From sequence record NC_019929.1: a DNA stretch of 64,000 bases; one strand, written 5' to 3'. How positions within the stretch are numbered: position 1 is the first letter of the stretch; the number at the start of each line of letters is the position of its first letter. The translations under genes were made by a program, and so were the position numbers. Of the stretch, positions 1 to 63,814 are shown one piece after another. Under the pieces are notes generated by a model. That model was not told the origin of the DNA. It did no database searches and saw nothing but the letters and a program-made list of their open reading frames with translations.

Positions 1-589
1 ATCTCGTCATTACTAAGCATTCAGATTCTCCTGCTAACCCGAGGTCCATCAGCAGGCCGAAGTCAACCATCTGGAAGTGTTCGGATAATTCCTCACCCCA
101 GATAAATTTCATCTTCTCTGCTAAGTCCCCGTTCTGTTCCTGGAAGATAAAGATTTGGTGCATTTCCTCACCAAACGAGTCGAACTGATGGTTAGAACGC
201 AGCGCGCGTACGCGCACACCGATCAAATCCGCAGCTTCCGGATTCTCCGGGTCGGCCCAGTTTAATGCCAGGCCAATCAGGTTATCGGTATCCAGGTTCT
301 GCGTAGAGCGACGCAGGATTTCGATTTTGTGGCGCGGGAATTCCGCAACACGCTGTTCGAAGCCCGGATTACGGATGGCCACCTGCTCCACAGAGTTGTG
401 TGTTTTCTCAACCCCGTCCAGCGGCAGAATGACGTTCAGTCCGAAGCGCACACACAGACGACGAATCTCATCAGTAAACGTGTCCGGTTCCACAATCGCG
501 TGGATGTTGTACATGCCGTGCTTTTGCATAAACGCGGCAACAAGGTGAAGATTACGCTTCGTAAAATTGTGTATCAGCAACGACTTCAT
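1..589 (-). CDS. Hypothetical protein, 3'-truncated by window edge; last visible gene of the radical SAM cluster
   Basis: Hand-translated, not in ORF track: MKSLLIHNFTKRNLHLVAAFMQKHGMYNIHAIVEPD... Open to position 1; GGAG upstream; overlaps the end of the SPASM gene. Confidence 0.75.
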   Translation of the reverse strand, partial: MKSLLIHNFTKRNLHLVAAFMQKHGMYNIHAIVEPDTFTDEIRRLCVRFGLNVILPLDGVEKTHNSVEQVAIRNPGFEQRVAEFPRHKIEILRRSTQNLDTDNLIGLALNWADPENPEAADLIGVRVRALRSNHQFDSFGEEMHQIFIFQEQNGDLAEKMKFIWGEELSEHFQMVDFGLLMDLGLAGESECLVMTR

Positions 590-1895
590 TCGCTGGTGCT
601 CCTAATTGGTTTTTCTTCTCGGCTGCTAATTTGCGATCGCGCACACAAGACACACAGTAGCACTGGGTCTTATCGTTCAGATCGGTATAACGGGTAGTAC
701 CGGTTTTCTGGTAGAAGTATTCTGCTACCAACAGTTTGGCGGTAGTCCAGCCACACTGACGACGCTCAGCGTGATACGCTTTACGGTCTTCCATTTCCCC
801 GTCACCGTTCTCGTATGATGCCGCGGCACAACTACCACACGCGTGCTTCATCGGACAACCCAGGCACGTTTCTGGATAGTTGGTGTACTGCGTTTGAATT
901 TCGTTCAACAGCTTATTGTCATCGATATTGACAATCTCACGGCCACGCAGTTCTGCGATAGCCTGACGTGTCGTTACCGTGGACATAAAGCGGTTACAGC
1001 CGTAAATCTTGCGGTCGAAGCCCAGGCAGGTCATGTGGGTTACGGTACCGCAGAACGGACGCACACGCTCCGGGTTCAGACGCGTTGCTTCGTCGTCCAG
1101 GAGCTTCTGACGCCAATCCGGGTCCCAGGTTGCCATGAAGTCCAGGCCATCCGGGAAGATGTGGGTCAGGCGGTTACGTGGGTCTTTCTCAAACCCTTTG
1201 TCGAACCAGTAGTCAATCACGTCCATCATCTGCAACGCAATCGACATTGCCATGGTGCGCGGCAGAATGTCTTCGTACGTGACGTTACCGGAAATGGTAC
1301 CGCCGCCGGTGACGTCCATCAGGTGCTTCATGGACTCGGCGTATTTCGGCAGGGTCTCAGAGGTAAAGGTGGCTTTGATACCCAGTTCCAGGATACCGAC
1401 CGATTTCAGGTAGTTGTAACCACGCATCGCTTTTTCGTACGACCCTTCACGGGTAGTCGTAAAGATACGATAACGGTCATGCACTTCCGGCAGACCATCG
1501 ATAGACACGCCGATGGACAGTTTGTCACGCCAGCGTTCGATAATCTCGCGGTTCAGCGGCTTGTCGAATAACGTGCCGTTCGTCGAGATGGAGAAGATAA
1601 CGTCACGGTTATCACGCTTCGCCAGTTCTTCGGCCGTTTCAAATACGGCTTTCAGAATCTTCGGCTGCATCATGGGTTCACCACCGATGATATCGATGAT
1701 AACTTCCACGTTCTTCAAATGACGGTCACGGTCGAAACACGCATGAATGAAGTCCACTGCATCATCGGCTTTATTGTTACGCGGGTATTTACGCTCGTAG
1801 CAATATTCACAGTCGAGGTTACAGGAGAGGTTGGTCACCACCTGATAGGTTTTGGTGATTTTGGGCTCTTGGGCCGGTGCTTTGGTATCACGCAT
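552..1895 (-). CDS. Radical SAM/SPASM-domain peptide maturase (CXXX-repeat-target type)
   Basis: CNLDCEYC (CxxxCxxC), GGEP, ISTNG, VSIDG; C-terminal Cys cluster FCG..TC..YGC..CLGC-x5-CGSC..QC typical of SPASM. Confidence 0.92.
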   Translation of the reverse strand: MRDTKAPAQEPKITKTYQVVTNLSCNLDCEYCYERKYPRNNKADDAVDFIHACFDRDRHLKNVEVIIDIIGGEPMMQPKILKAVFETAEELAKRDNRDVIFSISTNGTLFDKPLNREIIERWRDKLSIGVSIDGLPEVHDRYRIFTTTREGSYEKAMRGYNYLKSVGILELGIKATFTSETLPKYAESMKHLMDVTGGGTISGNVTYEDILPRTMAMSIALQMMDVIDYWFDKGFEKDPRNRLTHIFPDGLDFMATWDPDWRQKLLDDEATRLNPERVRPFCGTVTHMTCLGFDRKIYGCNRFMSTVTTRQAIAELRGREIVNIDDNKLLNEIQTQYTNYPETCLGCPMKHACGSCAAASYENGDGEMEDRKAYHAERRQCGWTTAKLLVAEYFYQKTGTTRYTDLNDKTQCYCVSCVRDRKLAAEKKNQLGAPANEVVADTQFYEA

Positions 1896-2793
1896 TGCGA
1901 TTTAACCCCGCTTGTATTACACGATTCATGTACTGGTAAGCGTCATAGCCAATGACTTCGGCCAGACGGTTACAGCCCGAGTTCAACACATCTATGGCAT
2001 TGTCAGACTGGTCAAACGTGGCATCGGATTTTACCCACACCAGATTGCTACAGTCGTCACAGTGCTGCCTGAAGAACTTGTTGATGCTGAGCGTTTGGTG
2101 GAAACCGTTCAGCGTGTTCAGCTCGGTCAACTGATCGTGCATTTTGTTGTACCCGTACATGAAGTTCATGACGAGATCCTGGTTAAGCGGCTTAGGCATG
2201 AAGTTATCAAACATCACACGGTAACCGTTTAAGCGGTAATGGTACAACGACTCGTGGAGTTTCAACAGGTCGTAGAACCAGTGCTTCGGTGCTAACTGGG
2301 CACGGGTAATCACCGACCATAACGTGATGTTGTCCAGCGCGTCAAACACCTCGAAAGCATCGTAGCGACGCTCCTCAGCGATACGCAGCAACGGACGTTC
2401 GGATTCTGCATAGCCGTCAAAGGAGACGAAGATGCGATCCATTTGCTCAAGCACCGGCAGCTGGGCCGGGGTCAGTCGCAGACCGTTGGTGTACATTTCA
2501 TGCTGTAGGTGCGGATAACGTTCCTTCAACTCAGCCATAAAGTCCTGGATTTTATTGAACGCCAACAGGGGTTCACCGCCCGTCCAGTTAATTTGCTGAA
2601 TAGTAGGATGCGCTTCCAGCGTTTCAAACAGCTTCTCTCTTTGGATGTCGCGCGCACTGTCTTTGACATCCATATACCCAACACCGCCACAGAAGCTACA
2701 ATCGAGATTGCACTTCGAGGTGGTGACAATCGACAGCTCCATCGGAGTTGACGAAGGGTCGCGACGAATAGCCGACACAGCTTCTTCACTCAT
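1888..2793 (-). CDS. Second radical SAM protein (short, incomplete SPASM)
   Basis: CNLDCSFC, TGGEPLL, YTNG, VSFDG; only CDDC plus one later Cys at the C-terminus. Confidence 0.88.
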   Translation of the reverse strand: MSEEAVSAIRRDPSSTPMELSIVTTSKCNLDCSFCGGVGYMDVKDSARDIQREKLFETLEAHPTIQQINWTGGEPLLAFNKIQDFMAELKERYPHLQHEMYTNGLRLTPAQLPVLEQMDRIFVSFDGYAESERPLLRIAEERRYDAFEVFDALDNITLWSVITRAQLAPKHWFYDLLKLHESLYHYRLNGYRVMFDNFMPKPLNQDLVMNFMYGYNKMHDQLTELNTLNGFHQTLSINKFFRQHCDDCSNLVWVKSDATFDQSDNAIDVLNSGCNRLAEVIGYDAYQYMNRVIQAGLNRNA

Positions 2794-2809
2794 TGCAGAT
2801 TTACTCCAG

Positions 2810-3697
2810 TTATTCGAAAGTCAGCTTGAACAGCGGGTCATCTTTGATGTCCACACCCGTCTTTAACACGAACGGGTCGTTATAAGCATCAAGGATCTGG
2901 TTCAGAATAGCCTGACGGTCATTCACACGCCGTAAGTCATCTAACGTGACCGTGCGAGCATGGAAGGCAGACACTGCGGTTTTCTCTTCAGCCGTCAGTT
3001 CTACTTTCGTCAGCAGGAACGCTACCAGTTTGTTCAGGTCTGCTTCGGTTGCAGGTGCTTCACCGAACTGCGTCTGCACCAGGTACTGCATCCACGGTTT
3101 GCGGATACGCTTGGTGATGTCGTGTTCGTCAAAGATTGCTTCGAATTGTTTCTCAGCCGGGTTCCAGACAAACTTGTAGCTGTAGGCCAGCAGGTCAAGC
3201 ATGTTGGTGATGCCGTGCTTTTCAAAGCCAACGATAGGGTAATACTCTTCGACACCGGTATACTGCTCAGTGTCTTGCGTTACCTGCGTAAACCAGCCAG
3301 GCATAGACCCCATGTAGTCCCAGCTCCATTCACGACGTGCCATTGGTTTCAGGCCACTTTCGCTAAACGGAATCAGGAACATTTCCAGGTCAACCACCTG
3401 GTTCAATACCGCATCGCTCAGGAAATATTTCCCATCCACTAAGCGACCTTTCACATCTTGCTCACCGGCCGTGATGTGAATGTGCTGCACGCTACGACCC
3501 GCTAACGTATAATCGGCTTCCACCGTATAGTTCTTCGGGTTAGCCAGCTCACGTCCACGAACCTTTGGCCACTCCCCTGGCAACTGACTGATCAGTCGCA
3601 CCTGGTCTAACAAGTGAAATTTCACACTGTCGTACAGGCTGATATGCAGTGGGAAGTTTTGCGTTGTCTTAAACGCAAGGTGTAGATCGTTCTTCAT
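2810..3697 (-). CDS. Hypothetical protein in radical SAM cluster (possible accessory/chaperone)
   Basis: 295-aa ORF tightly packed between the Cys-rich ORFs and the radical SAM genes; no motif recognised. Confidence 0.75.
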   Translation of the reverse strand: MKNDLHLAFKTTQNFPLHISLYDSVKFHLLDQVRLISQLPGEWPKVRGRELANPKNYTVEADYTLAGRSVQHIHITAGEQDVKGRLVDGKYFLSDAVLNQVVDLEMFLIPFSESGLKPMARREWSWDYMGSMPGWFTQVTQDTEQYTGVEEYYPIVGFEKHGITNMLDLLAYSYKFVWNPAEKQFEAIFDEHDITKRIRKPWMQYLVQTQFGEAPATEADLNKLVAFLLTKVELTAEEKTAVSAFHARTVTLDDLRRVNDRQAILNQILDAYNDPFVLKTGVDIKDDPLFKLTFE

Positions 3698-3707
3698 TTA
3701 AGTCCCC

Positions 3708-3914
3708 TTATCGGTTCCCCGCTCCGTGACTACAACCACCGCTACATGTCCAGCTACAAGACCCGCCGCAGTTATAGTGCGATAACGGTAACCCAGAAAG
3801 GTTGTTAGTCGTGCTAACCGTCCCCTGGGTTGCGATGAACGAGTTAGCGTCCGCCGTCTTGATATAGCCTTCCACTTGCACCATTTTGTCACGGATGTTT
3901 TTGAGTGAAATCAC
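3708..3914 (-). CDS. Short Cys-repeat precursor-like peptide C (68 aa, 4 Cys)
   Basis: GTG start with GGGGG upstream gives MISLKNIRD..., matching the two paralogs; core HYNCGGSCSWTCSGGCS. Confidence 0.85.
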   Translation of the reverse strand: MISLKNIRDKMVQVEGYIKTADANSFIATQGTVSTTNNLSGLPLSHYNCGGSCSWTCSGGCSHGAGNR

Positions 3915-3958
3915 ACTAACCCCCAAATTTGTAAAAAGTTAACTGGGAGACGAGGGCG

Positions 3959-4357
3959 TTACCGCGTTGGCCCGGAACAACCGGAACAACCAGAGCAGCT
4001 TGAGGAACATGAAGAAGAACAACCTGTTGAACACGTTCCTGAACAGCCGTTTGCACAGCCTCCTGAACATGCACCCGAACAGCCCGTACAGGTCGAAGAA
4101 CAACCCGAAGTACAGCTGGACGAACAACTTGCCCCACACGTTCCCGACGCAGAACCTGAGCACCCACCGGAACACGATGAACATGTCCAACTACAGGTAC
4201 CACCACAATCATAATGCGCACGCGGCTGGCCGCCAAACAACGTCGAGTTGTTCGTGGCTTTATTGCGAATATAGGTCTGCACCCCTGCCGCGTTTTTCAA
4301 TGCGGTATTATCAATACTATTCAGACGGTTCTGAATATCTTTTAGGTTGATAGCCAT
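3959..4357 (-). CDS. CXXX-repeat precursor-like peptide B (132 aa, 20 Cys)
   Basis: ATG at 4357 with GGAGACATC upstream; MAINLKDIQNRL leader; core HYDCGGTCSWTCS followed by Cys/Ser/Gly/Thr repeats. Confidence 0.9.
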   Translation of the reverse strand: MAINLKDIQNRLNSIDNTALKNAAGVQTYIRNKATNNSTLFGGQPRAHYDCGGTCSWTCSSCSGGCSGSASGTCGASCSSSCTSGCSSTCTGCSGACSGGCANGCSGTCSTGCSSSCSSSCSGCSGCSGPTR

Positions 4358-4368
4358 GATGTCTCCTA

Positions 4369-4752
4369 CTACGGCCCAGAGCAGCCAGAACAGCCTGTAC
4401 AGCTCGATGAGCACGACCCCGAGCACCCGCTACATTTACCGGAGCACCCGCCGGAGCAACTGCCTGAACAACCTGAGCAACCCGAACACCCGGTAGAACA
4501 ACCGCCCGTACAGCTGCCGGTACACGTCGATGTACACGTTCCCGAACAACTGGTACAACTTGCCGAACACCCGTTAGAGCACGACCAGCTACACGTACCA
4601 CCACAATCTAATTGACCCGGTGTCCAACCCGCAAAGCGCTCTTGCGCGTTATACGCTTGCGAGGCAACTTGCGCATCAACGCGAGGTCCGGTGGCGACAT
4701 TGGCTTCCACTATTTGCAGGCGGTCGCGTATGTTTTTAAGTGAGATTGCCAT
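4369..4752 (-). CDS. CXXX-repeat precursor-like peptide A (127 aa, 21 Cys)
   Basis: AAGGA upstream; MAISLKNIRDRL leader; core LDCGGTCSWSCS followed by Cys/Ser/Gly/Thr repeats. Confidence 0.9.
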   Translation of the reverse strand: MAISLKNIRDRLQIVEANVATGPRVDAQVASQAYNAQERFAGWTPGQLDCGGTCSWSCSNGCSASCTSCSGTCTSTCTGSCTGGCSTGCSGCSGCSGSCSGGCSGKCSGCSGSCSSSCTGCSGCSGP

Positions 4753-59493: not shown

Positions 59494-60391
59494 TGCCGAG
59501 ATTCAAATCCACGCCGTAGACAGCTGGTATACCGACACAAAGGTGTACCAGTTCGGCAGCTACGAACAACAGCGTAGCAAACTGTATCGTTGCCTCGGTG
59601 AAATTGCCGAGGGGGTACAGAAAGACGATACCTTAAAAGTGGCAGCCGGTATCGGTCGGGTGCTGTGGACGTTCATCGGCCTTGTGCATTTCTCCAAGCA
59701 AGCTCACGATGTTCCCCTGCACAGCCAACTCGACCACTATATTCAGTTGAAGCTGAAAGCCACCAACAAACACGCCCAGCTTCATGCGCTGATGCACAAC
59801 ACCCTGGATCTGGTCTGGCAGACACCCGAAGACGGTGACTTCTGTTTGCACAGTTTCCTGAAAGCGTTTGGTGATTTCATGATGGGACTGAATACGTTGT
59901 GTAAAGCCACAGGGCTAGAGTTTGACCGGGTGGTGTACAACGGCCATTACGCACTCATTCGCACTCAGGGTGAGATGAACGAGCTGGGGATGTTTATTCC
60001 TGCGCCAGGCGATCTGGATGGTGATGTAATGGGCCAACCTCTGGTTAATGAGAAACTTCCTTCTGGTCAGCTCACCCACTTTTATATCGAAAGTGGGCTG
60101 AACGCCGCGGCTGCTAAAGCGTTCGTGCCGTACGTTCACACCCCGTTTGCTTCTCACAAGGTCGATGAGGTCAGTGATAAACTGGCGGAGGCATTGGAAG
60201 AACTGTTGGAGCGGCACATCTACAGTGATGATAAATGGCGACATCTGACTTTCGAGCGGACGCCAAAGATTAACATCATGTACGAAAACGGCACCGTGAC
60301 AGCCACGTACAACGATGACCTCAAGTTTATCATGAATACCCTAAAACAGGATAATTTGCACCATGAAACAATATCTGGACTTACTGCGTGA
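59480..60391 (+). CDS. Hypothetical protein with degenerate MazG-like helical N-terminus (303 aa)
   Basis: ATG 59480 with GGAG; [25 protein letters not shown] resembles EE.gEla.ai.k.d..ei.DalgDll, but the acidic residues are lost. Confidence 0.5.
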
Positions 60392-61391
60392 CGTTCGTGA
60401 CAACGGGCACGAAAAAGCAGACCGTACGGGCACGGGCACCCTGTCGTTATTCGGCGCACAAATGCGCTTTGACCTGCAAAAAGGTTTCCCGCTGGTCACG
60501 ACCAAAAAGGTTCACCTCCGCTCCATCATCCATGAGCTTCTGTGGTTCCTCATGGGCGATACCAACATCCAGTATCTGAAAGACAACAACGTCAGTATCT
60601 GGGATGAATGGGCAGATGAAGATGGTAATCTCGGCCCGGTGTACGGTAAGCAATGGCGTGAGTGGCCAGATATTCGTGCGGTACCTTACGAAGAATTTAA
60701 TCGTCTGACCGCTGCAGGTTACGAAGATCTCGATGCCGGTACTTGGAGCATGGATGAAAACTGCTCCATTTATTTCGTTCGGAAGAACATCGACCAAATC
60801 AGCAAGGTCATGGAACAACTGAAAAACGACCCGGACAACCGCCGTATCATCGTCAGTGCCTGGAACGTGGCTGACCTGGATGAAATGGCGTTAGCACCAT
60901 GCCATGCCTTCTTCCAGTTCTACACGCGTAAAATGACCCCAGCGGAACGTATGTCCTGGTTGAGTGAGAACAAGCCCAAAGACCGTGCAATGATTAACCG
61001 TGTCGCGTATGCTTCGCAAGACGATCGTGAAGAAGCATTGACTGAATGTTTCGGTGTACCGACGCGGGTATTGTCCTGTCAGCTGTATCAGCGCAGTGCT
61101 GACATGTTCCTAGGCGTACCGTTTAACATTGCCTCTTACGCGCTCCTGATACACATGTTTGCCCAGCAGGCCAATATGGCAGTAGGTGACTTCGTGTGGA
61201 CGGGTGGGGATGTGCATCTGTACTCCAACCACCTGGAGCAGGCAGATTTGCAGTTAACTCGCGAACCTCATCCGTTACCACAACTGCGGATTAAACGTCG
61301 TCCGGATTCTATCTTCGACTATAAGTTTGAAGATTTCGAAGTGGTCGGATACGAATCGCATGACGCTATTAAGGCACCGGTGGCGATATGA
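60363..61391 (+). CDS. thyA: Thymidylate synthase
   Basis: [63 protein letters not shown]. Confidence 0.97.
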
Positions 61392-62185
61392 AGAACAAGC
61401 TCTTTGTTTTCTCGGACGCATTCTACACCACCAACTACGATCAGTACAACCACGGCGTAGTTGCTGCGATTGATGAAGAAGATGCCCAGCGCTTAGTGCC
61501 GACTGGTATCGATTTGATCGAAGTTGGTGAGACCGATGCGTATGACGTGTTGTTGTTTGCGGAAGGTGTGCGTAACTGGCCTGAGCGCCACCGTTACACC
61601 AACCACACCATCAACTGTCCTGGCTGGAAAGTCATTGAAGGGGCAGATATCTCGGACTACGAGAAGAAGCTTGTGGAGTTAATGCAACTCCCACCGGACA
61701 TGGACATCGTGTTCAGTAACTGGGGGAAAGTGCCAGAAGACAGTGAGCACGGTAAACCGCCTGCGGCTGGGCAATGGACAATAACCGCAACCTCTGGTGA
61801 ACTCGGGGGCTCTGCACAAGTTCACTTTAACGGCTTGCCTTCTCTGGACGCTCTGCTTGAGCCTGCGGAACACACGGTCAGTTATACCTGGCAGGATACC
61901 GAAACCTTGCCGGTGACGATTGAGCATGTTCTGGCAGACGTGTTGAAGGTGGTGGGGCGAGAGTCTGAGTACCACGACTGGGCAGGAATGGCACGACAGC
62001 ACTTCTATTCAGAAACGGCAGTGCTCGGTTGGGAAGAACTGACTGAGGAAATCGGTCAGTACAAGAAAACATGGTACCGTCACCCGGACTGGCAAACGCT
62101 GGTTCCAGAGATGGTGCGTAAAGAAGCCTCCAAACTCACCGTTATCACTGATGAAAACGGCAGAATGCGGATGGCGCAATACTAA
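61388..62185 (+). CDS. Hypothetical protein
   Basis: 265 aa, ATGA overlap with thyA. Confidence 0.75.
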
Positions 62186-62201: not shown

Positions 62202-62681
62202 GTGTCTATGACTCCAATTAACTATAACTTGGTAGTGAAAGAACTTTCGAACGGTCTGGTTGCATTGGACAGTGACGAAGCCCTGAGCTTGGCAATGCTC
62301 CCGCATGTGGAGCTGAGCGAATTCCGTACCATCCGCTACGGCGCTGGCCGTCAGAAAGGGGTGACCGAACACGCCATCAACATGGCGGCGCACCACAGAG
62401 GGTCGGTGCTTATCCTTGTCCATCATGAAGCGTTACGCAATGAAGCGATGCGTAAGTTCCATGCGAAGGCATCGGGAGATGGGTGGTTAACTGTGCATTG
62501 CAGTTACCTGCCTGAGAACTGGAAACAGGCTACCGGCTCTGGACTCTCTGGTTATGAGAAGTTCAGTCTGGTCATTGTCGATGAGGCCGGGTTCTTCTTC
62601 AACAAATTTAGCTTTGACAAAATCTACCGCAGTCTGGTCGATGTTGTGACGCCGGACGTGGTTATCCATCTCATCAATTAA
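62202..62681 (+). CDS. Small degenerate P-loop/helicase-like domain protein
   Basis: GAGRQKGVT (Walker A-like), VLILVH, LVIVDEA (Walker B); start 62202 or 62208. Confidence 0.45.
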   Translation: MSMTPINYNLVVKELSNGLVALDSDEALSLAMLPHVELSEFRTIRYGAGRQKGVTEHAINMAAHHRGSVLILVHHEALRNEAMRKFHAKASGDGWLTVHCSYLPENWKQATGSGLSGYEKFSLVIVDEAGFFFNKFSFDKIYRSLVDVVTPDVVIHLIN

Positions 62682-62692
62682 GAGAACACGCA

Positions 62693-62848
62693 ATGAGCAA
62701 TAAAGAGCAGGTACAGGAATCACAGCTGGCAGCTGACCCAATGGACTTTGGTGACATCCCAGGTCTTGACCCGGATGCCGGTGTTGTCGGTGGTGTTGAT
62801 GCAGCTATCGAAGACGATGGTTGTGCTGGCGGTGCCTGCAAAATTTAA
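62693..62848 (+). CDS. 51-aa acidic peptide ending in an NrdA-like redox tail DDGCAGGACKI
   Basis: Hand-translated, below ORF-track cutoff: MSNKEQVQESQLAADPMDFGDIPGLDPDAGVVGGVDAAIEDDGCAGGACKI; fills the gap exactly. Confidence 0.75.
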   Translation: MSNKEQVQESQLAADPMDFGDIPGLDPDAGVVGGVDAAIEDDGCAGGACKI

Positions 62849-62908
62849 CAAATAGGTGTGTCCATATGGACACACCACTTTATTTTTTTACCCAAAAGGA
62901 AAATTATC

Positions 62909-63814
62909 ATGGGCGATCGTTTTGTTATTCAGATTCCGTACAACGTTATTGTAAACCCGAATGCGTATTTAGAGCAGATTAACACCCTGCTGGCAGGCTT
63001 CTGTCATCGCCAGCACGCGACCCCGTGGTCGTTTGAAGCGCTGTACTCACTGAGCGTTAACAGTGAGACCGGCAGTACCCGCGTTGAAGGGAAGGTGAAA
63101 ACCGAAGACGGTCGTCTGGAAATCAACGATTTCGAAATGCCGTGGCAACTGAAAGATGTTGAGTTCAACGGCAAAGTTAACCATCCGCGTTATATCCCAC
63201 TCTTCTCTGTTGGCCAGTGTATTGACAATGTACTGGGCTGGTCTGCTGCGCGTGGTATTCTGGAAAACGGCAAATGGGACACCCAGGTGACCAAGCTGTA
63301 TGAAGAAGACGGTGAAGCGGCGACCGGTATCAGCAAATCGAAAGAGCGCCTTATCATGGACGGTCTGGGTGATGCTCTGGTGGTGCTGGTTAACGTGATG
63401 GAACTGTCGGGTATCGGTGCAGGTAAATTACGCGAGTGTTTTGTTGACGCCACGCTGGCACGCAACAACAGCAACAACAAAGTCAATAGCTACGGCCCAC
63501 ACCGCCTGTTCCACTGGATGCGTATGTGTCTGACTATCGGTAATCAGGTGCTGTACACTGCGTACGATACCTACCTCGAGAACGACGAGAACCGTGGTAA
63601 GAAGTTCTCTATTGAGCTGGGTGAAACCAACGCTTCCCGTCACGCCGAATCATTCATTGGTCACGCCACCCATGCGGTGCACGCGATGTTGCTGCTCGCC
63701 GATCACTACAACATGCCTATCGAACATTGCTTCTCCCTGGCGTGGGATGAAATCAAAGACCGTAAAGGGTTCTTGAACGCCGACGGCATCTTCATTAAAG
63801 AAGCTGACGCCTAA
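62909..63814 (+). CDS. MazG-like nucleotide pyrophosphohydrolase with N-terminal domain and internal insertion (301 aa)
   Basis: QVTKLYEEDGE..IMDGLGDALVVL..CFSLAWDEIKDRKG...GIFIKE; ATG 62909 with AAGGA. Confidence 0.85.
   Translation: MGDRFVIQIPYNVIVNPNAYLEQINTLLAGFCHRQHATPWSFEALYSLSVNSETGSTRVEGKVKTEDGRLEINDFEMPWQLKDVEFNGKVNHPRYIPLFSVGQCIDNVLGWSAARGILENGKWDTQVTKLYEEDGEAATGISKSKERLIMDGLGDALVVLVNVMELSGIGAGKLRECFVDATLARNNSNNKVNSYGPHRLFHWMRMCLTIGNQVLYTAYDTYLENDENRGKKFSIELGETNASRHAESFIGHATHAVHAMLLLADHYNMPIEHCFSLAWDEIKDRKGFLNADGIFIKEADA

Follow-up and report, generated by a model that had tools for sequence, protein, structure and literature searches.

The DNA analysed here, a 64,000-nucleotide window of record NC_019929.1, derives from the 243-kb genome of the Erwinia amylovora jumbo phage phiEaH2 (genus Erskinevirus), and all positions are given in window coordinates, i.e., genome position minus 62000. 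Towards the end of the window, a short gene (gp153) is located between genes for thymidylate synthase and a MazG-like nucleotide pyrophosphohydrolase (Table 1), which is the neighbourhood recognised in the initial annotation of this DNA. The predicted frame of 51 residues, ending in DDGCAGGACKI directly before a TAA stop, is present as described. The gene had been considered unannotated, but RefSeq already carries it as the hypothetical protein G173_gp153. The product is acidic, as proposed, with 11 Asp and Glu residues against two Lys and Arg, and contains exactly two cysteines. The suggestion that it is disordered is borderline by charge-hydropathy, and applies to most of the orthologs, whereas the phiEaH2 protein itself falls just on the folded side; disorder-promoting residues account for 58–75% across gp153 and its orthologs. 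Searches of Pfam and NCBIfam at E≤1 returned no matches for gp153, Sml1-type small inhibitor families of ribonucleotide reductase (RNR) included, and a search of the locus against Rfam gave no credible RNA family. The protein does match PHROG 14561 (E 5.9e-31).

Table 1. Features of the phiEaH2 window considered in the text, and the chromosomal counterparts of gp153 in Rheinheimera.
Feature	Position	Strand	Remarks
RiPP-like cluster	552-4752	-	Two radical-SAM genes and three paralogous ORFs
gp083, radical-SAM/SPASM	552-1895	-	Best matches PapB ranthipeptide, CXXX-repeat and SCIFF maturases, below cut-offs
gp084, radical-SAM	1888-2793	-	
Three paralogous ORFs	3708-3926, 3959-4426, 4369-4752	-	N-terminal leader in common
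Thymidylate synthase (thyA)	60363-61391	+	Annotation; ORF coordinates
gp151	61388-62185	+	No known fold; fused to mini-protein module in contig L156
gp152	62208-62681	+	157 aa; ends 11 nt upstream of gp153
Shine-Dalgarno-like AAGAGA	62680-62685	+	7 nt upstream of gp153 ATG; overlaps gp152 stop
gp153 mini-ORF	62693-62848	+	51 codons and TAA; ORF list, RefSeq CDS G173_gp153
gp153 residues 18-36	62744-62800	+	Acidic/aromatic stretch, then Pro-Gly-Leu-Asp type motif; alignments
NrdA-type tail of gp153	62813-62845	+	Last 11 codons; identity to bacterial NrdA C-termini
Tail Cys codons	62822-62824, 62837-62839	+	Stop immediately after tail at 62846-62848
Intrinsic terminator	62855-62889	+	9-bp GC-rich hairpin (62855-62876), then T-run; terminator scan
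MazG-like nucleotide pyrophosphohydrolase	62909-63814	+	PHROG 7855, E 1.9e-129; directly downstream of terminator
Rheinheimera mini-ORFs	L004 828-986; L114 2638-2796		Chromosomal

In its last residues, gp153 closely resembles the redox tail at the C-terminus of class Ia NrdA. A search of solved structures with gp153 gave a sole match, the class Ia NrdA chain 7mdi_A, which aligns C-terminus to C-terminus and is identical over the last 12 residues. A scan with the last 11 codons, back-translated and followed by a stop, against one genome per bacterial species yielded at least 120 loci. Among the 120 listed, the exact 11-residue tail with its stop forms the C-terminus of an NrdA in 117 (thus in at least 117), and 83 of these contain a full ORF of 740 aa or more; of the other three, two are free-standing and one is too short to tell. 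Judged by sequence, the match of the gp153 tail to NrdA is far beyond chance. The initial annotation had given nine of 11 residues as identical to the E. coli NrdA tail, and the E. coli protein in NZ_CP027437.1 indeed differs at two of the last 11 positions. Variation among the 120 listed Enterobacterales-type NrdAs is almost confined to two positions, namely the residue after the first cysteine and the Gly/Ser that follows it. The same pattern is seen in 16 members of the gp153 family, where the last eight positions are Cys (16/16), a variable residue (five Ala, four Thr, four Pro, three Glu), Gly or Ser (12 and four, respectively), followed by Gly, Ala, Cys, and Lys (16 each) and a terminal Ile (15) or Leu (one). 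The mini-protein tail is accordingly variable at the two positions where the Enterobacterales enzyme varies, and fixed where NrdA is fixed.

The NrdA of E. amylovora is not among the listed homologs, and two other Erwinia species were therefore used as proxies. Their NrdA tails have the E. coli form, which departs from the phiEaH2 tail in two core residues, and the phages of E. amylovora carry at least five variants of the mini-protein tail. Because of these two core differences and the number of variants in phages of one host, we see no tight matching between tail and host. A departure in the spacing of the cysteines is found in Wellingtonvirus (Kwan and pEa_SNUABM_11), which is not represented in the listed tblastn matches. 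Since tblastn recovers orthologs partly through the tail, the syntenic slot was inspected in these genomes, and it contains a mini-ORF that keeps the acidic leader, the Pro-Gly-Leu-Asp motif, both cysteines, and the terminal Lys-Ile. The coordinates are L182 1846-2073 in Kwan and L183 2339-2530 in pEa_SNUABM_11; in Kwan, the gp152 homolog follows the mini-ORF instead of preceding it. The tail in Wellingtonvirus has two residues between the cysteines (CX2C) instead of four (CX4C), and so departs from the tabulated Enterobacterales NrdA tails. CXXC and CXXXXC are, however, the two tail types of class I RNR (PMC9669993). Both phage spacings thus correspond to natural RNR tail types, with the Cys pair as the invariant core, and this pair is conserved in all 16 family members as well as in the CX2C form.

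Upstream of the tail, no significant resemblance of gp153 to either NrdA or NrdB was found, and a faint similarity in composition to the C-terminal end of NrdB was discarded as unsupported. Residues 18–36 contain a motif that is common to the phage lineages, Wellingtonvirus included, and absent from NrdA. This acidic/aromatic motif may give the protein a further contact site for docking to NrdA or to a redoxin. The free-standing proteins can be described as a family of 47–97 residues with net acidic charge and two cysteines in the last six to eight residues, followed by Lys-Ile or Lys-Leu and a stop. All of this applies to gp153, which is also located in a dNTP/thymidylate cluster. The core proposal of the initial annotation, that the class Ia NrdA redox tail exists here as a separate small protein in a nucleotide-metabolism neighbourhood, is borne out, and extends to a conserved family.

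By tblastn, orthologs of gp153 are present in about 70 phage records, all of them SPN3US-like jumbo phages, spanning at least six genera with hosts in Erwinia, Salmonella, Cronobacter, Escherichia, and Proteus. Identity to the phiEaH2 protein amounts to 100% for Stratton and 82% for Asesino. A word-indexed protein search returned four near-identical proteins only, and tblastn, pattern scans, and synteny were therefore used to put the family together. Eleven orthologs, drawn from the tblastn matches without selection on the tail motif, were used for composition and signal checks. These are 48–97 residues long and all net acidic (10–18 Asp and Glu against 2–10 Lys and Arg), and each has exactly two cysteines, except that of Phobos, which has three. 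Purine-rich Shine-Dalgarno-like sites precede all eleven. In phiEaH2 the terminator begins 7 nt past the gp153 stop; Erskine-, Seoul-, Machina-, and Alexandravirus all retain its GC-rich hairpin (about -16 to -19 kcal/mol) and T-run, and the stem shows compensatory changes. Whole-ORF dN/dS values are 0.20 (phiEaH2/Asesino), 0.12 (ChrisDB/SNUABM_9), and 0.08 (SPN3US/SNUABM_29), and for the last eight codons pS is 0.69 compared with a pN of 0.12. By these comparative measures, gp153 is shown to be a real gene under purifying selection. The protein and its orthologs are contained in PHROGs 14561, 38753, 24014, and 20277, which are automatic clusters labelled as of unknown function and whose entries carry no record of the likeness to the NrdA tail.

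These observations bear on the possibility that gp153 is a non-functional leftover, in decay, of an nrdA that the phage once carried. The tail could derive from the 3' end of such a gene, phage NrdAs with this very tail exist, and many other jumbo phages encode RNR (PMC13282480). A remnant would, however, hardly be expected to show dN/dS values of 0.08–0.20 and to possess its own start, Shine-Dalgarno-like site, and terminator, or to be conserved in at least six genera as well as in a bacterium and an unrelated lineage of phages; similarity to NrdA is missing upstream of the tail. A remnant is for these reasons highly improbable.

Another reading of the initial annotation took gp153 for the tail portion of a phage NrdA that has been split. 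Split enzymes do exist, as in the NrdJa/NrdJb subclade (PMC9669993), and this arrangement would require the remainder of the enzyme to be encoded by the phage. When full-length NrdA sequences from Rosenbergiella, Rheinheimera, and Neisseria were compared with the whole phiEaH2 genome by tblastn, nothing was detected beyond the last 12–17 codons of gp153, and NrdB queries from Rosenbergiella and Neisseria gave no credible match. The ten largest unannotated phiEaH2 proteins contain no RNR domain in Pfam. The phiEaH2 annotation lists genes for thymidylate synthase, dihydrofolate reductase (DHFR), thymidylate kinase, and MazG-like and HD-domain proteins, but no RNR, thioredoxin, or glutaredoxin, and none of these three is found in the whole SPN3US genome either. 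A scan of both genomes for small redoxin-like ORFs, which used generic active-site motifs and carries low weight, also gave none; the conclusion relies on the annotation and the homology searches. The initially proposed comparison with the Cys pair of the phage's own nrdA has no object, as phiEaH2 encodes no nrdA at all. With neither NrdA nor NrdB identified by tblastn or annotation in phiEaH2 and SPN3US, a split phage enzyme of class I is refuted. Nor does gp153 itself match any Pfam family, and it is thus without the catalytic barrel (PF02867), the ATP-cone (PF03477), and the all-alpha domain (PF00317), all three of which are present in the true NrdAs compared; what it shares with them is an acidic C-terminus with the Cys pair at the extreme end. 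Since the RNR beta gene is reported to be among those conserved in more than half of jumbo phages (PMC13282480), the SPN3US-like group, judged by phiEaH2 and SPN3US, is notable for lacking RNR. Contigs of 237–250 kb that do bear nrdA are unrelated to phiEaH2.

The stop of thyA overlaps the start of gp151, and thyA is therefore probably the first gene of the tightly packed unit to which gp153 belongs. The thyA gene measures 1029 nt in phiEaH2 and 918 nt in the 98%-identical Stratton (L003 1864-2781), where the DNA match falls into two pieces, which indicates an insertion or deletion of 111 nt inside the gene. Two proteins, gp151 and gp152, are encoded between thyA and gp153. For gp151, Pfam and NCBIfam gave no match, there is no invariant cysteine, a structural model of moderate quality found no structural match (best TM about 0.15), and only five representatives of the family are present among 1.8 billion proteins. 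The gp152 protein, which is 76% identical between phiEaH2 and SPN3US as compared with 33% for gp151, likewise has no Pfam or NCBIfam match. It is modelled as a lone RecA-like domain (pLDDT 66) for which Foldseek indicates domain 1 of SF2 helicases (TM about 0.5), and it has a Walker-B-like Asp-Glu pair, while an atypical glycine-rich loop replaces the canonical Walker A motif.

A looser version of the tail pattern, applied to IMG/VR viral contigs, gave 36 loci, of which 20 are phage NrdAs, 15 are free-standing, and one is a fusion. In six of these contigs (L139, L140, L141, L144, L146, and L150) the C-terminal part of NrdA with the tail forms a separate ORF of about 342–468 aa, compared with about 760 aa at full length, which suggests that nrdA is split or interrupted by mobile elements there. 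Seven of the 36 loci are free-standing copies on contigs of about 60 kb that belong to a lineage unrelated to phiEaH2, and for which no isolated, annotated relative was found. In this lineage, the mini-ORF start and the stop of an unrelated gene of 277 aa overlap, the neighbours encode RdgC, a dNMP kinase, ThyX, dUTPase, and a dCMP-deaminase-like protein, and there is no RNR within the 20 kb examined. The fusion is located at 79-1146 of L156, a contig of 237 kb that represents a true relative of phiEaH2. Here a gp151 homolog (27% identity, E 1e-23) runs on in frame into the mini-protein module, with no gp152 homolog between the fused parts. As this is a single metagenomic contig, the arrangement could be either a real deletion-fusion or an assembly artefact.

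The mini-ORF is also found outside phages. Two Rheinheimera genomes contain an acidic, free-standing ORF of about 50 residues with the NrdA tail and a terminator of its own; its chromosomal position, directly 3' of a ubiK/BMFP-family gene, is shared by the two. The pair differs by 20 synonymous and five nonsynonymous codons, as expected under purifying selection, and the NrdA of Rheinheimera itself ends in the same tail. In the public sources, the mini-proteins are hypothetical throughout, and the only families to which they are assigned are unnamed PHROGs.

The genomic surroundings allow an assessment of whether the tail serves a phage partner such as gp151, rather than the host RNR. The natural fusion in L156 would agree with such a pairing, as would the order gp151-gp152-mini-ORF, which is kept in Erskine-, Seoul-, and Machinavirus. 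On the other hand, gp151 offers neither an invariant cysteine nor a recognisable fold, gp152 models as a RecA-like domain with no redox link, and the fusion is known from one metagenomic contig only. Profile comparison detected no relationship between gp151 or gp152 and the genes upstream of the mini-ORF in Derbicusvirus, Alexandravirus, and the 60-kb lineage, and Rheinheimera has neither gp151 nor gp152. We consider a phage partner of this kind improbable. What persists in phages, even where the flanking genes are non-homologous, is a context of dNTP and thymidylate metabolism, i.e., thyA and mazG in phiEaH2, a dCMP deaminase gene two genes upstream of the mini-ORF in Alexandravirus, and genes for ThyX, dUTPase, and dNMP kinase in the 60-kb lineage. 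Because nucleotide metabolism is the only constant companion of the mini-ORF, a host partner is indicated.

The start of the window contains a RiPP-like cluster that has to be considered in relation to gp153. Long C-terminal Cys-x3 repeat tracts are present in two of the three paralogous ORFs that accompany gp083 and gp084, and homologs of gp083 occur in 67 phage records. The RefSeq genes gp087 (3939-4184) and gp088 (4436-4570), both on the minus strand, are out of frame with the overlapping Cys-repeat ORFs; as the latter look like real genes, the two annotations are probably mis-framed. A small, acidic protein with C-terminal cysteines such as gp153 could in principle be a RiPP-like precursor or substrate of these radical-SAM/SPASM enzymes, given that the best matches of gp083 are peptide maturases, although below the curated cut-offs, and that the maturase is found across most of the same phage group. 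The maturases are, however, about 60 kb away and have adjacent precursor-like ORFs with Cys-x3 repeats of their own, while gp153 has a different leader, two cysteines only, and no Cys-rich repeat core. The Rheinheimera locus and the 20 kb examined around the mini-ORF in the 60-kb lineage contain no maturase, and the exact identity to the NrdA tail would be left unexplained. The chance that gp153 is such a substrate is very small.

Each turnover of class I RNR leaves a disulfide in the active site; the electrons for its reduction come from the C-terminal Cys pair, to which thioredoxins or glutaredoxins supply them (PMC4078304; PMC9669993). On this basis, the reading we favour, already among those of the initial annotation, with a probability of roughly 0.45, is that gp153 mimics the NrdA redox tail in trans, and acts as an extra electron shuttle on the host RNR and its thioredoxin/glutaredoxin cycle. 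A thioredoxin or glutaredoxin of the host would reduce the Cys pair of gp153, and the reduced tail would then reach the active site of the host NrdA in trans. As a diffusible, additional shuttle, gp153 would in this manner help host RNR turnover during replication of the 243-kb genome. The phage has neither RNR nor redoxin, and gp153 therefore most likely uses host partners. Recognition by both NrdA and the redoxin is to be expected, given the invariant residues of the tail, its free C-terminal position, and the retention of both cysteines. Since both cysteines are kept everywhere, a working dithiol/disulfide cycle seems more plausible than mere binding. That the disulfide in gp153 would be reversible, and reduced by thioredoxin or glutaredoxin, we infer from the identity with the NrdA tail and by analogy with 1qfn_B, a detached 25-residue NrdA tail that was solved as a separate chain. 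In that structure, the partner of the tail peptide is glutaredoxin. Host NrdA and thioredoxin or glutaredoxin are thus the probable partners of gp153, and a positive effect on RNR is the predicted outcome.

Not all observations agree with a shuttle. Judged by the two Erwinia proxies and the variants in E. amylovora phages, the tail is not tightly matched to the host, the CX2C variant departs from the Enterobacterales type, and disorder is borderline by composition. The tail of NrdA is tethered, moreover, and given the large advantage in local concentration that this provides, a free copy may not add flux. The same tail mimicry would also suit a decoy or competitive inhibitor, likewise raised in the initial annotation, where the free tail blocks the entrance to the host NrdA active site or titrates thioredoxin or glutaredoxin, and thereby slows regeneration of the host RNR or diverts reducing power, for host takeover or regulation. 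There are precedents for inhibition: for Sml1, a block of the regeneration carried out by the R1 C-terminus has been reported (work cited in PMC3618301), and the free R1 C-terminal domain UN-24 is toxic and forms a non-reducible complex with Rnr1 (PMC3618301). Because of these precedents and the concentration advantage of the tethered tail, a positive sign of the gp153 effect is proposed only tentatively. For phages such as phiEaH2 and SPN3US that have no RNR of their own, however, blocking the sole RNR available would probably be self-defeating, as their DNA requirement is likely to far exceed what can be salvaged from the host chromosome. The gene is furthermore placed amid genes for dNTP production, a protein that simply blocks would have no need to keep both cysteines in every lineage, and a bacterium retains a selected chromosomal copy, although a regulator is conceivable in that case. 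A decoy is on these grounds an unlikely reading. It is the company of dNTP genes, the full dependence on the host RNR, and the unfailing presence of both cysteines that favour the shuttle over the decoy. A further step, which we take only tentatively, is to propose that phages lacking RNR, and one bacterial genus or more, produce a diffusible substitute for the NrdA tail that enters the class I RNR cycle of the host in trans.

Compared with the class Ia NrdA tail of the E. coli and Neisseria type (CX4C), gp153 has the same last 8–12 residues at the same extreme C-terminal position, an acidic and flexible stretch before the tail, and the same two tolerant positions. It differs in being a separate gene of 51 codons, with no other NrdA sequence and in a genome without RNR. 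Like gp153, the 1qfn_B peptide is a free NrdA C-terminus apart from the enzyme, but it is a laboratory construct, whereas gp153 is a natural, selected gene with an additional conserved motif upstream. Sml1 and its relatives, as well as the UN-24 domain, are also small and act on R1 at its C-terminal tail or in competition with it (PMC3618301). These are, however, eukaryotic and inhibitory or toxic; Sml1 has no sequence relationship to gp153 at the Pfam level, and UN-24 is a 135-aa domain of the full-length R1. Rearrangements of the electron-delivery parts of RNR by fusion or splitting are known from Facklamia, where glutaredoxin is fused to NrdB (PMC6187632), and from the naturally split class II enzyme NrdJa/NrdJb (PMC9669993). 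The gp153 family is comparable in this respect, but the genomes with the fused or split parts also encode the catalytic RNR, while phiEaH2 has the tail alone. Literature searches on a free-standing tail, a phage inhibitor of RNR, or expression of the mini-protein returned nothing relevant. The mechanism that appears to be copied is textbook knowledge; a selected free-standing copy in RNR-less phages and a bacterium is undescribed in the libraries and literature searched.

No step in the turnover of class I RNR is less well understood than that of the Cys-pair tail, which is disordered and rarely seen in structures, and regeneration of the enzyme can be rate-limiting. If our reading is correct, a natural free-standing tail would be a ready probe for how the tail gains access to the active site and is recognised by redoxins. 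Were gp153 to act as a decoy or inhibitor instead, the bacterial world would have its first counterpart of the small fungal RNR regulators. In either case, a protein annotated as hypothetical in about 70 phage genomes gains a specific and checkable hypothesis. The chromosomal copy in Rheinheimera suggests that the principle is not limited to viruses. As a shuttle, gp153 would constitute the first example of a virus that tunes a host enzyme by means of a detached piece of the catalytic cycle of that enzyme, and would point to a new viral strategy, in which phages without an RNR of their own still alter the electron supply of the host enzyme.
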